From: Perkinsus chesapeaki ATCC PRA-425 | Lineage: Eukaryota > Protista > Perkinsozoa | Direction of reading: 5' to 3' | Assembly (NCBI GenBank): GCA_013115145.1 | Contig: JAAPAO010000043.1 | Coordinates: forward strand, 43,726-107,725 | Length of the DNA stretch: 64,000 bases | Shown here: positions 7,750 to 64,000 of the stretch, piece after piece | Layout of the letters: each line of letters begins with the position of its first letter | Position numbering within the stretch: the first letter of the stretch is position 1 | Notes under the pieces: model-generated | The model's database searches: none | What the model saw: only the letters and a program-made list of their open reading frames with translations | Told to the model about the DNA's origin: nothing | Program-made: the position numbers and the translations under genes

Positions 7750-9985
7750 ACAACTCATCACACAGGACGTGACGGACGCATGACCCCCTCCGGTCTCGGC
7801 CCCGAGTCCCGAAGGGAGCTCCGGAGGACCCCTGGTGGGCGACGAAACCGTGGCTTCTTGTAGCCACTGGACATCGACCAGGACCACGAGTAGGACGTAA
7901 CAAAGCCCTCCCTCGATCCTCCTTCATCGTCGCTCAATGGCGAGGACTCAGACAGCACATCCACTACCGGTCTGGTATCATGGCGCTCTGGCAGGGAAGA
8001 TACCGACGGTGGGGATCCAATTGTTGGCATTTGATAATAGGCTGACCCTCCTCCTCGCTGCAAGCCCATCGACCTAGCGCAGTGGGACTCCTGTGCGACC
8101 CGGCACCTGCTGAAGAGCAAAGACTACTACTTCACCGTGGAGACCTCCATTTACTCTGAAATGCCATCAAGCCTCTCGCGGAAGGCTTTGAGCTGTTTGT
8201 CTACTTCGAGATGGACCTCTTCATCCCCACGGGGCATCTCCGACCGATTCTTCCGCTCCAGCTCGTCCTCCAACTTCGCTACAGCCGCCTCCAGCAGCTC
8301 GATGTACTCCTTATGATGGCGTCGCTCGCCCAGTAGTCTGTTCAGGCTTGAAGAGAGTTCACCTCCTAACGGCTCTGATGCTTCGCTCCGCCGTAGAAGC
8401 CTGATAAAAGCGTCATCCTCGACGACACCCTAGACTGAATGACGATGCGAATGTGCCCCTCATGTCGGCATTTCTTCGAACCAATTGAAACTCCAATGAA
8501 TACCACCAAATATGTTGCTACGGTGGAATTCTTGTACCACCCTCCAGCCCAGTTTGCCATACACCTCGCTCTCCCTCCTGGAGACACTCAAGCTGTTCGC
8601 CGCCGACACCTCCATCTCTCGGAGTTCCCTCCTCAGCCTTGACATCTCCTCCTCCGCCTCCGCCAGCTTCCTCATCAGATTTTCCTGCCAACCTGTTATG
8701 GCGGCCCAATAAGTAATCACCGACCTTCTCCCGCTCCACTTCCCCCAAAGCGGCTTTCTCCAGTCTAGCCGCTTCTACAGCTTTCCGCATGACTCCGCCT
8801 TCGCTGTCTAAATTGAATATCCCAGCGTCCAACCTACCGCTCCCACCGCCAAGAGCCTCGGCCAGCAACGTCAGCGTGTCCACAGGGTCGCCCTTCGCCT
8901 CCTCGACTACTCGTAAAACCCCCGCGACCTTCTCCTCAGCACTCTGCCTTCTCACCCGTTCCACCTGTAATACAACCGAAGCAGTCCCGACAGAGGCGAA
9001 GCTTCCCGACCCTCAGCTGGCGGGTCGTAGAGCCCAGTCGAGCCACCAGGCGTTCCCGGTCACTTGTCTGTTTATTCAACTCGGCTTGGGTGTCCGCCAG
9101 CTTACAATTGAGAGTTAGTCGCTCTGCGTTCAAGGCTACCGAGACGGTCTCGATCACGTAAGTATCCAGTGCTCACCCTCAATACGCTCGGCAGCAGCTG
9201 ATCCAGGGGACGTGCAGACAACGGCGGTCGTCCTCCTCCTTGGAGTCAGTCTGCAGGACCGGGCTGACAGGAGGGGGGCCGAGCGATGCTATCGAAGAAA
9301 AACACCGATAAGACATATCCGCTATTTTCTGTACCGTTGGCTTTCCCGCTTTATCACGTGCCTCCTCCACCACACCGCAGTCCCCCAGCAACTGGCGCTG
9401 CCTCAGTTTAGTCCTGGTCTGGGCCTCCACGAGACGTCGCTCCAGCTGAGCCACCTCTGCGTCCAGACATGCAGCAGATGAAGCGTAGTGCCGTGAGACC
9501 ATGGGCATGCAAATAACTGGAATAATGATTTCGGTAGGAGCCCCCCTCAGAACTCAAGCGGCGGGAGGCTGCGAGAACCACGAAAGATGCCACGGATCGA
9601 GGGCTTGTCTGGACCAACAGACAATTGTACAATGGAAGAAGATATATTAGGAATCAGCAGCACGGAGGCGAGGTGGCTTGTGAGGGTCGCGTCAGAGAAC
9701 TAGATTCGATACCTGAGAGATAAAGGTGGGGAATGAGTGGCGCAGCCGGGGATGGAACCGGGGGACCACACGGAAGGACAGCACGAGCCTTAACGGACTG
9801 AGCTATCCCACCTCGTCCTCCTCCGCGAATGTCCTCCATGGAGTATTACACCTCATTATGTCGACCCAATCACGCGGCGGATGACAAACGAATTTCAGCA
9901 GATTCTGTCTTCGACAATATTGCAAAATAAAGTACCTGAAATCGGACAGACCATCCAAACTGAACGCCTCAAGCCACGAGGCCAT
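7750..9985 (-). CDS. Hypothetical coiled-coil protein (multi-exon, boundaries approximate)
   Basis: A series of ORF segments with heptad character (LDAEVAQLERRLVEAQ; KLADTQAELNKQ; RKLAEAEEEMSRLRRELREME) bounded by GT/AG sites. Confidence 0.45.
9738..9812 (-). pseudogene. Full-length (75 nt) degenerate tRNA-like sequence at the start of an intron
   Basis: GGTGGGA-TA-GCTCAGTCCGTTAAGGC is a D-arm/A-box remnant and CCCGG-TTCCATC-CCCGG-CTGCGCC-A is a T-arm, acceptor strand and discriminator. The anticodon arm is unpaired and the T-loop G is mutated. Confidence 0.7.
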
Positions 9986-9998
9986 CTCGCCAGGCGTG

Positions 9999-12209
9999 CT
10001 ACTCGGGGATCGAATCTAATGAGGGGGATAGAACGAGAATTCGACTAGATTGATCTGCTATTAAAGCGAACGAAGACATCAGGAAGAATCCTTTTGTGAA
10101 CATATAATGTTCCTCTGTGATGCCACCAACCCAAACCGAATAAGAGTAAACCTTCCAATACGACCGAGAAGAAATGATTCCCCCAAGACTTACAGGATGT
10201 TCCCCACCACCACAGCTCCCACTGTAAAGGCAATCACGGTCCATTCTCCATTAACAAATGGAGCCCCCAGGATGAAACAGATGAACACTGATGGTGGCAG
10301 AAGGAGAATAGTACACCCCCAGAAGCCCATAGGGATCGTATAAGGCCGCCAGATACTCGGGTTCATATACCGCAGGTAGAGGAACGCCGAGAACTCGAGG
10401 AGCTCGGCCAGGCAATACCTGAGATCATTCGATTGGCTTCCAAAGCCGAAAGATCCGATTTCCGCGATCAGGCAACGAAATAAGGAGGCTTTCCGGAGCC
10501 GAGCTTTAACGGCTCCTCCACACAAGTGCTGCTAAGCATTCAGGTATACACCAAAATGGTTCCCATGACCCCCCCAAAACCGCTTACACACAGTTGAGCA
10601 GCTCCACTATGTCCAGGAAGTCCAAGGTGGTGAGACAGAGTATCACACAGAGCTGGAGGCATATCGCGAATGTAGGGGTCTCGTGCTTATTACGGTAAGC
10701 CAGCTTCTCAGGAAGCCACCCATGCTCGGCCATCGCCTAATAATAAATATTAACTTCGGATGCATTTTACAGAGTTACCTGAATCTGATACGAGTCCGAA
10801 GACATCTCCGCATGGTACTGGCCTATATTAGACACGACTGCCGCCAGGACCACCCACCCTCCCAGAAACCCTCCACCGACGTCATAGGCGACCTACGAGA
10901 TCACTAAACGGTCATACAGGTAGCTCACGCTTTACCTTGCCGAGGAAGCCGGCCTGCCAGGAATCGAAGGCTTTATCTCCCTCGAGGGCAAATGAACCAT
11001 CAACACCTGTGGCGATCCCTAAGGGCAATATATACCCGAGACAGGTGAGGCACAGTGCTAGCAACAATGCCTTAGGCATCGCCGACCGAGCGTTCTCAAC
11101 CTGGATGCAGACGTGATGGGTCGACGGATGATCGAGAGCTTACTTCTCCAGCCAGAGTCGATACCGAGTCCCAATAGTTTAAGTTCCAAAACAGCACATT
11201 GAGCCACTTGGTCCATTCCATATCGTGACGTCTAAGCAGCCAGTTGGAGGGGTCCACTTCAGGCACAGCCATAATGATGAAGACGATAAAGGGGGATAGA
11301 ACGAAACACATCATCACCACAGCCAACCACCCAACAACCTGAGGACCCCGATATCTCTCCATACCGTAATCCCCGTAATACCTTTAAGCCTCTGTAATTG
11401 ACATAGGTCAGACATAGTGTTAAAACCACAAGGACGACGTTATTGTACCTGTTCCACAATATTCCTCCCAATCCCAACCCGACCTTCTACTACAGTTTTT
11501 CGTTTAGTACAGGGAACGCTACAGCCAAATAGGTCATTAATAGGTGAGGGTAGATAGCATTATCAGTGGCCCCGGATAACCACGACCAAAAACCCTCCTG
11601 GAATCCCCAGTAGGGCCCGAAGGCTGCTGTCACCCACGAGACATATCTGGCACACTAAACTGCTCGACTGGGACAGAAGACAACTTACCCGCAGTTGCTC
11701 GGGAAGGTGCTGCTCATCTCAGCTGTGACAAGGGCCTCAGGTAGGCACCAAATGAAAGGAAAAATGAGGAACCCAAGCAGTGCCCAGAAGGGCCCACCTG
11801 CCGCTACCGCATCCTCAGTACCAAAGGGGCCACCTGAAGGGATATAACCCAGCCGTCTATTCCCAGTCAACAAGGTAAAGTAAGTGTAATGCACCGTTCG
11901 GAATGAAATTTGATTTCCGTGAAGAGGGATGGGATACTTACCCGAGACGGAGTAGAATATAATGGCCACAGCGCCCCAAAGGGTAAGAGGCTTCTTCCTC
12001 CCCTGCGGCTTAATCATATAGCTCACTGAGGGGGATGTAGGATGCACATTGAGCGGGCTTCGGATCTCCGATTCCTCTGCCAATATTGCCTGAGTCTCCG
12101 CAGCGTCACGTGACATGCTGCGGGCCCTCGGGCCTCCAGATAAGGCCCGATACGATTGCGAACGAGGCCCTTCTATGCCGGCGCCCGTGTGGTCTTCCGT
12201 ATAAACCAT
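9999..12209 (-). CDS. APC-family polyamine/amino-acid permease (PUT/RMV1/POT1-like)
   Basis: [16 protein letters not shown]|[60 protein letters not shown] and [10 protein letters not shown]...RPYTIP match this subfamily. Confidence 0.9.
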
Positions 12210-62699: not shown

Positions 62700-64000
62700 C
62701 GAGCATCACACCGTCAAGAAGGAGCCCCCACTTCACGTTCATCACCCAGATGAATGTGCTAGAATTGATATAGAAATTATGGGGAACCTCACAAGTTCAA
62801 CCAGGAAGGAAGTCGCCGATCGTCAGCTTCCTAGTGCTACTGCCCCATGCCCTCCCACCTTCAGTTTCCCTTTTCGTGCTGCAACTGCATCCGCCAGGAC
62901 TTCTGCAGATATATCACTAAGTGCATGATTAGCGTTTAGATAGAGTGATTCTAGAGTAGTGTTGTCCTCCTTAAGGACCTGATAGAGGATAAATCCAATT
63001 ATATAATTCAACACCATTAATCCAACATCATAATTGTAGATTATCAAAGCCATGTACTAGATATCAAAACTCTAGCTCTAGCATCTAGTTCATAGGGTGC
63101 AGCAGCGCAGAAGGTAAAGGACGACTTTGCAATTCTTCCCCCAGGGATCTATCCCAGGATCCTGCGCATCCCATTCTGGGCTCTTCACTTCAACAACTCG
63201 GGAAATATACAGCGCGATCCCTGCAGCCAGCTAAGCACCTCATTGCTTAGTAAGCCACCCGATCATGCCAGAACTACGCTGCCTCAGTCTTGAGATGGCG
63301 CCCGCCATAGTGGACAGTTTTTACGCACAGTGGACCCCGCTCTCCAACGAGGTTGCCCCAAGTTCTCAACCATTCACTCAATTCTTTATGTAACGAAATG
63401 CTGCACAGAAAAATCATTCAATATTAGTATACAACTTCTCTAGTTAGTCGGGACTAGTAAAATGTAGCAACGACAATGATTGCTATGATTCCTCTTCTTC
63501 TTCCACTGTTCCCTGCCAGCCCACAGTCACACAGCCAATCATAGGAGAGAAAGCAAAAACGCTCGAAAGGTAATCTGTTAATGAATTATTCTCTTCTTAT
63601 CAAATCCATTCCTCCTTCCACTACAACTGCCTGATACAGCAAGCCCCTCCTCAGCCGCAGACCCTCCTTACCTTGGCCAATTTCGCAACTCCTTGATCAG
63701 TGAATTTATTCTTCCTCATCTCCAACAGTCGCAGCTTATTATTAGTCTTCAACGCCTCAGTAATGGACTCTAAAGAAAGTCGCAATCCAAAGGTCCCGGG
63801 TTCGATCCCCGGTAGTGGCACCTAAACCCTCATCGGTCATATTGACTCCAGATATCAGCAAGGTCTCTAACGGATGACCGTTGCCTGCCCGACCAAGAAC
63901 CTGATAGAGGACTCACCAGTGCAAGTGTGTTACTAGTGATACGGAGGAGGAGATATAATAGAAAGGAGTTTGATAGGAAATATGCTACTAGTGATACGGA
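62700..64000 (-). CDS. RNI-like leucine-rich-repeat protein, partial (5' end outside window)
   Basis: Spliced LETLLISGVNMTDEGL|ESITEALKTNNKLRLLEMRKNKFTDQGVAKLAK|VLKEDNTTLESLYLNANHALSDISAEVLADAV. Confidence 0.8.
63779..63821 (+). pseudogene. tRNA 3' half (perfect T-arm) forming most of a 52-nt intron of the minus-strand LRR gene
   Basis: TCCAA-AGGTC-CCGGG-TTCGATC-CCCGG-TAGTGGC-A-C has a 5/5 T-stem, a canonical T-loop, a 7-nt acceptor strand and a discriminator. Confidence 0.8.
63931..64000. repeat. Direct repeat TACTAGTGATACGGA, 55-bp period, running off the window end
   Basis: Copies at 63931-63945 and 63986-64000, inside an LRR intron. Confidence 0.6.

Follow-up and report, generated by a model that had tools for sequence, protein, structure and literature searches.

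Can a whole tRNA gene become the body of a spliceosomal intron? The question is raised by a locus in the protist Perkinsus chesapeaki ATCC PRA-425, which belongs to a genus of shellfish parasites, where a 64,000-nucleotide stretch of contig JAAPAO010000043.1 (assembly GCA_013115145.1, positions 43,726 to 107,725; hereafter the window, with coordinates counted from its first base) includes a gene for an amino-acid/polyamine permease of the PUT/LAT type that runs directly into a tRNA-shaped element of 75 nt at 9812-9738. Both lie on the minus strand, to which the window coordinates below refer unless marked otherwise. An earlier note on this DNA had proposed that the element is a degenerate tRNA whose insertion supplied a splice donor and became an intron. 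Our own answer, given with moderate confidence, is that positions 9811-9713 would be the last intron of the permease gene, a U2-type GT-AG intron in phase 0, and that its body would be a complete tRNA gene, copied long ago and since decayed.

The element can be laid out along its whole length as a tRNA, with acceptor strand, D arm, anticodon arm, variable loop, T arm, second acceptor strand and discriminator A in order, an assignment based on cloverleaf counts, alignment to tRNAs and a covariance model. The D-arm string picked out in the earlier note was located at 9805-9787 (one match, where 0 were expected), its T-arm string at 9762-9746, the 3' strand of the acceptor at 9745-9739 and the discriminator A at 9738. 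The GT at 9811-9810 does correspond to tRNA positions 2-3, as had been claimed, and the 3' end of the element is indeed followed by a pyrimidine tract and AG, in the form of 25 nt ending in CAG (9737-9713). Internal promoter motifs are also recognizable: an A-box-like sequence, TAGCTCAGTCCG, lies at 9805-9794 and a B-box-like sequence, GGTTCCATCCC, at 9759-9749, the latter one mismatch away from GGTTCGANNCC. An exact A-box 9-mer and the B box occur together in the element at canonical spacing.

Base pairing points the same way. Sixteen of 21 cloverleaf pairs can form, five of them G-U; dinucleotide shuffles form 9.1 on average (P=0.0014), and among the remaining 75-mers of the window just 0.011% (1.1e-4) reached a count of 16. 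Fourteen real tRNAs of the P. chesapeaki genome served to build a covariance model which, run over both strands of the whole window with filters off, gave a full-length match (model positions 1-73) exactly at 9812-9738, which at 14.0 bits ranked third in the window; the two higher-scoring matches were other tRNA-like relics, described below. Shuffled background had been named beforehand as the level at which the tRNA reading should be abandoned, and the element stands narrowly above it, with 14.0 bits compared to 10.0 bits for the best match outside the tRNA-like sites. In global alignments to the genome's real tRNAs the element scored 16 (Cys), 13 (Lys) and 12 (Ile), while the best-of-set scores of shuffled sequences averaged 8.2 (sd 1.9). 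Since the Cys, Lys and Ile tRNAs hardly differ in their closeness to the element, the parent is not assignable among them, and a search for the parent tRNA found no intact gene that has TAGCTCAG..AGAGC together with GGTTCGATCC.

The element does not resemble a working tRNA gene. ARAGORN reported 0 tRNAs in the window, and the Rfam tRNA model gave no match at its gathering score in the window and none at E<=10 when applied to 501 nt or 131 nt around the element. We took 29 bits under Rfam RF00005 as the threshold for a functional tRNA; the real tRNAs of the P. chesapeaki genome scored 55-75 bits under this model. The lowest-energy fold of the element is not the cloverleaf, and alignment to the custom covariance model indicated that several invariant tRNA bases have been lost, with CC at positions 18 and 19, G at 33, T at 37 and C at 57. 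Rejection by both ARAGORN and Rfam marks the element as a relic rather than a tRNA gene, and judged by its sequence it is a badly decayed copy of a whole tRNA gene. The description of it as a degenerate whole tRNA therefore holds, in that the score, the intact stems and the invariant bases of a functional tRNA are lacking and the marks of tRNA derivation, the boxes and the pairing, are present. Should the likeness instead be an accident of a GC-rich stretch, the silence of Rfam and ARAGORN would be expected, as would the E-value of just about 0.05 from the custom model, the calibration of which is rough. Such an accident seems very improbable, however, because independent lines concur: the A-box 9-mer and B box at their proper spacing, the 16 of 21 pairs, the same register in the covariance model, and membership in a genomic family, discussed below, that numbers 93 matches against 0 in a control.

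The meaning of the relic depends on where the permease gene ends. The window looks eukaryotic, without long open reading frames (ORFs) and with common short GT..AG introns, and the exons of the permease were searched one by one, each alone and not as a joined spliced protein. The gene starts at about 12209. Exon 9 (10417-10194), which ends in ..VVVGNI plus CT, found 208 homologues with phmmer and is 82% identical to its Perkinsus olseni counterpart over 225 nt without gaps; other exons weakly match Pfam AA_permease_2. The homologues of exon 9 were distant only (53% identity or less; environmental or Logan sequences), with no close orthologue and no transcript-derived Perkinsus protein among them, and no match was returned when the ORF that contains exon 9 was used in a word-based protein search, exon-sized queries being unable to reach full-length proteins. 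The tails of the homologues, which follow the pattern GNvLY.vLE..RR..W..F...PP...D....TP, align to 9934-9815 (tblastn E=5.6e-7 for homologue P0061 and E=1e-5 for P0108), which sets the end of exon 9 at 10194, intron 9 at 10193-9936 (258 nt, GTAAGT..TTTCAG) and the last long coding exon at 9935-9812. The frame join across intron 9, GNI(L)|YFILQYCRR, fits the GNvLY.vLE..RR portion of the homologue pattern. The last long exon encodes the C-terminal tail (L)YFILQYCRRQNLLKFVCHPPRDWVDIMRCNTPWRTFAEEDE, ends in phase 0 with ..TPWRTFAEEDE and is 80% identical to P. olseni. On these alignments the exon upstream of the element does code for protein, namely for the C-terminal tail of a PUT-type permease, and the earlier note was right to place the 5' end of the element on an exon boundary: the relic begins on the exon's last base.

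The C-terminal exon is single copy, as no paralogue or second allele of it was found elsewhere in the genome. An Rfam match to the Hac1/Xbp1 non-canonical intron at 9924-9852, inside this coding exon, scored 17.1 bits against a threshold of 41 and was judged to be chance. Near the other end of the gene, a 174-aa ORF (12209-11685) runs in frame through permease intron 1, so ORF lists overstate exon length there.

Two endings of the permease are conceivable beyond this point. If the transcript is left unspliced, an in-frame TAG at 9805-9803, part of TAGCTCAG, ends the protein as ..EEDEVG. If the 99-nt, phase-0 candidate intron at 9811-9713 (donor GAG|GTGGGA, acceptor ..CTCTCAG|GT) is removed, ..AEEDE would be joined to a putative terminal mini-exon of six codons, VSNLVL, followed by TGA (9712-9692, with the stop at 9694-9692). 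Introns of P. marinus are reported to range from 39 to 1622 bp and to be mostly shorter than 100 bp (PMC3101222).

Comparison with P. olseni bears on the choice. The P. olseni locus (L064) is syntenic with the window locus and has the same gene order, the neighboring 642-aa ORF is 70% identical to P. olseni FOL46_002480 (compared to 43% for a paralogue within P. chesapeaki), and the permease has its ten introns at the same positions in both species. Permease exons are 72-85% identical between the two, while the other permease introns are barely alignable, with identities of 0.10-0.51 over the longer length and large changes in length. The same element lies at the same place in P. olseni (L064 4752-4826), inside a 100-nt GT..CAG unit (L064 4753-4852) that has an overall identity of 0.60 to the 99-nt unit of P. 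chesapeaki. Identity is uneven along the unit: 0.82 in the first 22 nt, 0.57 in the remaining relic and 0.48 in the 25-nt acceptor tract, which in P. olseni is nevertheless still pyrimidine-rich and retains its CAG. Beyond the acceptor, identity rises to 0.76 (16 of 21 bases) across the six codons and TGA, read in P. olseni as VSSLVL and TGA at the matching place; over the 92 nt that follow this stop it is down to 0.50. The five substitutions in the mini-exon change one residue, conservatively; random placement of substitutions in a Monte Carlo test gave P=0.02. The unit possesses a U2-type donor and a pyrimidine tract with an AG acceptor, both kept in P. olseni, and GTGGGA appears to be a usable donor, since intron 6 of the P. 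olseni orthologue has the donor GTGGGG. Exon-like identity in the mini-exon, the conserved GT and CAG, and a usable donor together favor a real intron, and we predict that 9811-9713 is probably spliced as the last intron of the gene.

Several observations weigh against this prediction. The unspliced ending, ..EEDE-V-G-TAG, is equally viable and is kept in both species, and as it costs the protein no more than four residues, there may be little selection for splicing. The proposed downstream exon has only six codons, so that the coding comparison amounts to 21 bases in two species. The 82% identity of the first 22 nt (P about 0.008) goes beyond what a donor needs and is not accounted for by an intron. 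The P. olseni annotation gives no independent support, as it fuses the permease with the next two genes; it presents permease, coiled-coil gene and RRM gene as a single 1153-aa product (L064 2494-8187), and judging by the stops and by an ATG conserved in the coiled-coil gene, three genes seem to have been wrongly fused.

These points invite the alternative that the unit is not an intron at all: the permease would end as ..EEDEVG at the D-arm TAG, the relic would lie in the 3' untranslated region (UTR) or in intergenic DNA, and the pyrimidine-AG would be unused or would serve as a spliced-leader acceptor for the downstream coiled-coil gene. Conservation of the TAG and of the two codons before it, with GGA changed to the synonymous GGG, is what such an ending predicts, and coding up to the TAG would fit the high identity of the first 22 nt, although that conservation extends 13 nt past the TAG, beyond what coding accounts for. 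Perkinsus uses spliced-leader trans-splicing (PMC3101222), and the ATG of the coiled-coil gene, at 9508, is just 204 nt past the candidate acceptor AG, but another pyrimidine-AG site lies within about 20 nt of that ATG in both species and would be the more natural leader acceptor. Another relic of the same family, at 56138-56105, likewise lies upstream of an ORF and not between coding exons. What this alternative leaves unexplained is that the 21 bases after the AG keep their frame, their stop and five of six residues despite five substitutions, while the next 92 nt are 50% identical. We regard it as unlikely. As a separate observation, the first 22 nt of the unit (9811-9790) can pair with relic positions 31-41 in both species, in a hairpin that would enclose the donor; no compensatory changes in this hairpin were found between the two species.

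Under the interpretation we favor, a spliced terminal intron, the first base of the tRNA copy would be the last base of the exon, the pyrimidine-rich tract and CAG would supply the acceptor, and splicing would join ..AEEDE to the six-codon exon VSNLVL and its stop. The tRNA part is itself a fossil, a copy retained at full length within a dispersed set of tRNA-gene relics that would fill many very short introns; it was present before P. olseni and P. chesapeaki separated and has decayed independently in each. Presence of the relic at the same place in both species indicates that the insertion predates their split. The P. olseni copy scored at background with the tRNA model and drew no call from Rfam or ARAGORN. 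The A-box-like stretch has 11 of 12 bases in common between the species, and the positions of G18-G19 are CC in both. The B boxes read GGTTCC.. and GGATCG.., each one step from the consensus by a different single mismatch, which suggests that the ancestral element was nearer a canonical T arm and that both lineages are eroding it; their identity of 8/11 is below that of the exons.

The copy at the permease is one of many. A 21-mer covering the T loop and acceptor strand had 93 matches with up to 3 mismatches in the 41.7-Mb genome, the reversed control had 0, and among 30 of the matches that were examined there were 0 real tRNA genes. In the family unit the variable loop is followed by a T arm carrying GGTTCGATCC, then by seven variable bases and an A, in most cases with a T run after it, which is the layout of the genome's own tRNA genes with their terminators. 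Copies can be dense, with up to six in 3 kb, and many look like GT..AG units of 40-50 nt in which GT-AGGTC, formed by the end of the anticodon stem and the variable loop, would provide the donor and the T run and AG the acceptor. By these features the element at 9812-9738 is a member of a dispersed family of tRNA-gene relics. It is an unusual one, since its 5' half with the D arm is retained and many copies are without a 5' half. The T run after the discriminator is absent from it, with a 25-nt mixed pyrimidine tract (CTCATTCCCC...) in place of TTTT. A BLAST search of the genome with the 100-nt target found only itself; family copies have only a core of about 30 nt in common. When ORF continuity was tested for every GT..AG pair around 65 family copies, the sense orientation could not be told from the antisense one or from random positions.

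A possible second full-length member was noticed in locus L021, where a whole-tRNA-like GT..AG unit (GTCCGCGGATCAGTTGGTTAG.. to ..TTTTACAG) lies between open frames at about 950-1030 on the minus strand of the locus. Real tRNA genes were observed in clusters on G000 contigs C2943, C2831 and C1502 (loci L006-L011, L018, L020, L074, L075 and L086), with tRNA-Arg(TCT) genes in particular spaced at a few hundred bases up to about 1 kb, in keeping with reports of high copy numbers of tRNA genes in P. marinus.

A hidden Markov model (HMM) of the family core, run with nhmmer, found four copies in the window, an unbiased sample, at about one per 16 kb, among which the 9812-9738 copy had E=0.008. The clearest as an intron is at 53803-53763, a 41-nt intron of a 3-hydroxyisobutyrate-dehydrogenase-like gene that consists almost entirely of a variable-loop and T-arm relic (nhmmer E=2.4e-6; 15.8 bits with the custom covariance model). 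Here positions 71-127 of Pfam NAD_binding_2 stop at the donor, and the rest of the domain, followed by NAD_binding_11, continues after the acceptor, so that continuity of the Pfam domain confirms the intron. With a palindromic GGTACC in the upstream exon and a GGTAC at the acceptor, the tRNA model can draw an 'acceptor stem' that reaches into both exons (53823-53758); conserved residues are encoded by the exon part, so this extension is probably coincidental. The copy at 56138-56105 (nhmmer E=3.9e-5) lies upstream of a ferredoxin-like ORF and has a T run and CAG after it; it may belong to an intron of the 5' UTR or to an acceptor region for trans-splicing. The highest-scoring tRNA-like relic of the window, 67 nt with the D arm largely missing, is on the plus strand near the window end (63754-63820; 25.1 bits and E=1.7e-5 with the custom model, nhmmer E=6.5e-8). 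The earlier note had counted four tRNA-derived introns in the window. That number is borne out only in part: 53803-53763 is confirmed and 9811-9713 is probable, but 56138-56105, which is not between coding exons, and 63754-63820, near the window end, are candidates only.

The permease itself may harbor a second relic. A weak T-arm-like sequence at about 10022-10004, within intron 9, is a hint only (nhmmer E=2.0). Intron 9 is 258 nt long in the window (10193-9936) and 47 nt in P. olseni (L064 4579-4625), and an eroded T-arm-like piece is visible in both, hinting at a second relic in this gene that looks older.

Persistence of the two promoter boxes raises the possibility that the relic is still used at the level of DNA, as a TFIIIC or RNA polymerase III (Pol III) site under selection, in which case its status as an intron would be secondary. 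The A-box stretch, identical at 11 of 12 bases between species, and a B box with a single consensus mismatch in each species are in line with such use, as is the preservation of B-box primary sequence in the family at large when all five T-stem pairs are kept in only 9 of 46 copies (19 have the same A-C mismatch). Those 46 copies were chosen by their match to the B box, though, which biases the T-stem counts. At the permease the core changes of the B box differ between species (one has T to A where the other has a G to C change elsewhere), the P. olseni copy is at background with the tRNA model, and the intron 9 relic is eroded in both species. Selection on the boxes at this site therefore appears improbable.

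As to origin, we tentatively propose that the intron arose by insertion of a tRNA copy into the exon. The idea that the donor came with the inserted tRNA, which itself turned into the intron, fits the register of the covariance model and the 41-nt family members; it is less well served by the weak pairing at the 5' end of the element (5/7), by terminal repeats limited to AG|GT, and by the presence of the element in both species already. The element also has no T-run terminator, and there is no target-site duplication beyond the AG|GT that is usual for any intron.

A rather unlikely, though serious, rival is that the intron is older than the relic, such that the tRNA copy landed in a pre-existing last intron whose own GT is the present donor; with Perkinsus introns shrinking to a minimum, the copy would by now take up almost the whole of it. 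Between the first 7 nt and the 3' strand, pairs form at 5/7 positions, two of them G-U, and on account of this weak pairing the clear tRNA part starts at T8, six bases into the intron. Elsewhere in the family the two ends of the intron fall at differing points of the tRNA-like sequence, some copies have unrelated spacers between the GT and the relic, and intron 9 of the permease has its relic mid-way in 258 nt, all of which would be natural if relics had entered existing introns. On the other side, the best global alignment of the covariance model sets tRNA position 1 on the last exon base, and in the shortest copies, of 41 nt, the relic reaches both splice sites, which leaves no room for an older intron.

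If insertion into exons is the general route, Perkinsus would have a class of introns, hitherto undescribed, that derive from tRNA genes and their terminators inserted in sense orientation and that survive because tRNA anatomy doubles as splice signals. In such introns either the G-GT at the 5' end of the tRNA or the GT-AGGTC at the variable loop would act as the donor, and a T run or pyrimidine trailer with AG would act as the acceptor. The copy at 9811-9713 would then be a rare full-length example that documents the whole-tRNA progenitor of the commoner 3'-half introns, and some copies may act as TFIIIC sites. This wider proposal is possible, and we advance it even more tentatively than insertion at the permease.

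Full-text literature searches found no paper on spliceosomal introns or introners built from tRNAs, in Perkinsus or elsewhere. Introners, or introner-like elements, are families of introns derived from transposons, found in Micromonas, Aureococcus, dinoflagellates and some fungi. They resemble the Perkinsus family in that many short introns of one genome have a common repeat, which carries or abuts the splice signals, but the Perkinsus unit is only about 30-35 nt, comes from tRNA genes and occurs in highly diverged copies. Moreover, no terminal inverted repeats or target duplications were seen, the only repeat at the ends being the 4-nt AG|GT, and a copy common to two species gives no sign of recent mobility. 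The introner is thus the closest known concept, from which the relic family differs in source, in divergence and in lacking signs of recent mobility.

Other systems are alike in part. Short interspersed elements (SINEs) derived from tRNAs are also dispersed, high-copy, tRNA-related sequences with A and B boxes that often lie in introns; the Perkinsus relics have neither a tRNA-unrelated body nor a LINE-like or A-rich tail, and at the permease the relic would be the whole intron and not an insert within a long one. Nothing is conserved 3' of the acceptor strand in the target or across the family, which ends with acceptor strand, discriminator A and T run as does a tRNA gene with its terminator. 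Pseudogenes of tRNAs and isolated B-box (extra-TFIIIC) sites are likewise degenerate tRNA genes with recognizable promoter boxes and no functional cloverleaf, but the Perkinsus relic lies directly between a coding exon and a putative one, reads in the sense direction and has splice signals on either side. Introns can also be gained from filler DNA at sites of break repair, as with introns derived from organelle DNA, when a fragment inserted in an exon is tolerated by splicing and short AG|GT-like repeats mark the junctions. Here too AG|GT stands at both junctions of a foreign fragment that may have entered an exon, but the filler in Perkinsus is recurrently tRNA-gene sequence and forms a family.

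The origin of new spliceosomal introns is an old open question, to which insertion of mobile elements, the introners, is the documented route for gain in bulk. If our interpretation is true, the family of tRNA-gene relics adds a different source of introns in Perkinsus, and it shows that features of a Pol III gene can be read as splice signals. The copy at 9811-9713 provides a concrete predicted junction, 9812|9712, and adds a view of the whole tRNA where many other copies present the back half alone. It also adds a dated, two-species view, of a relic older than the split from P. olseni that is decaying and whose B box is unprotected here, which makes it less likely that every such relic still has a use.

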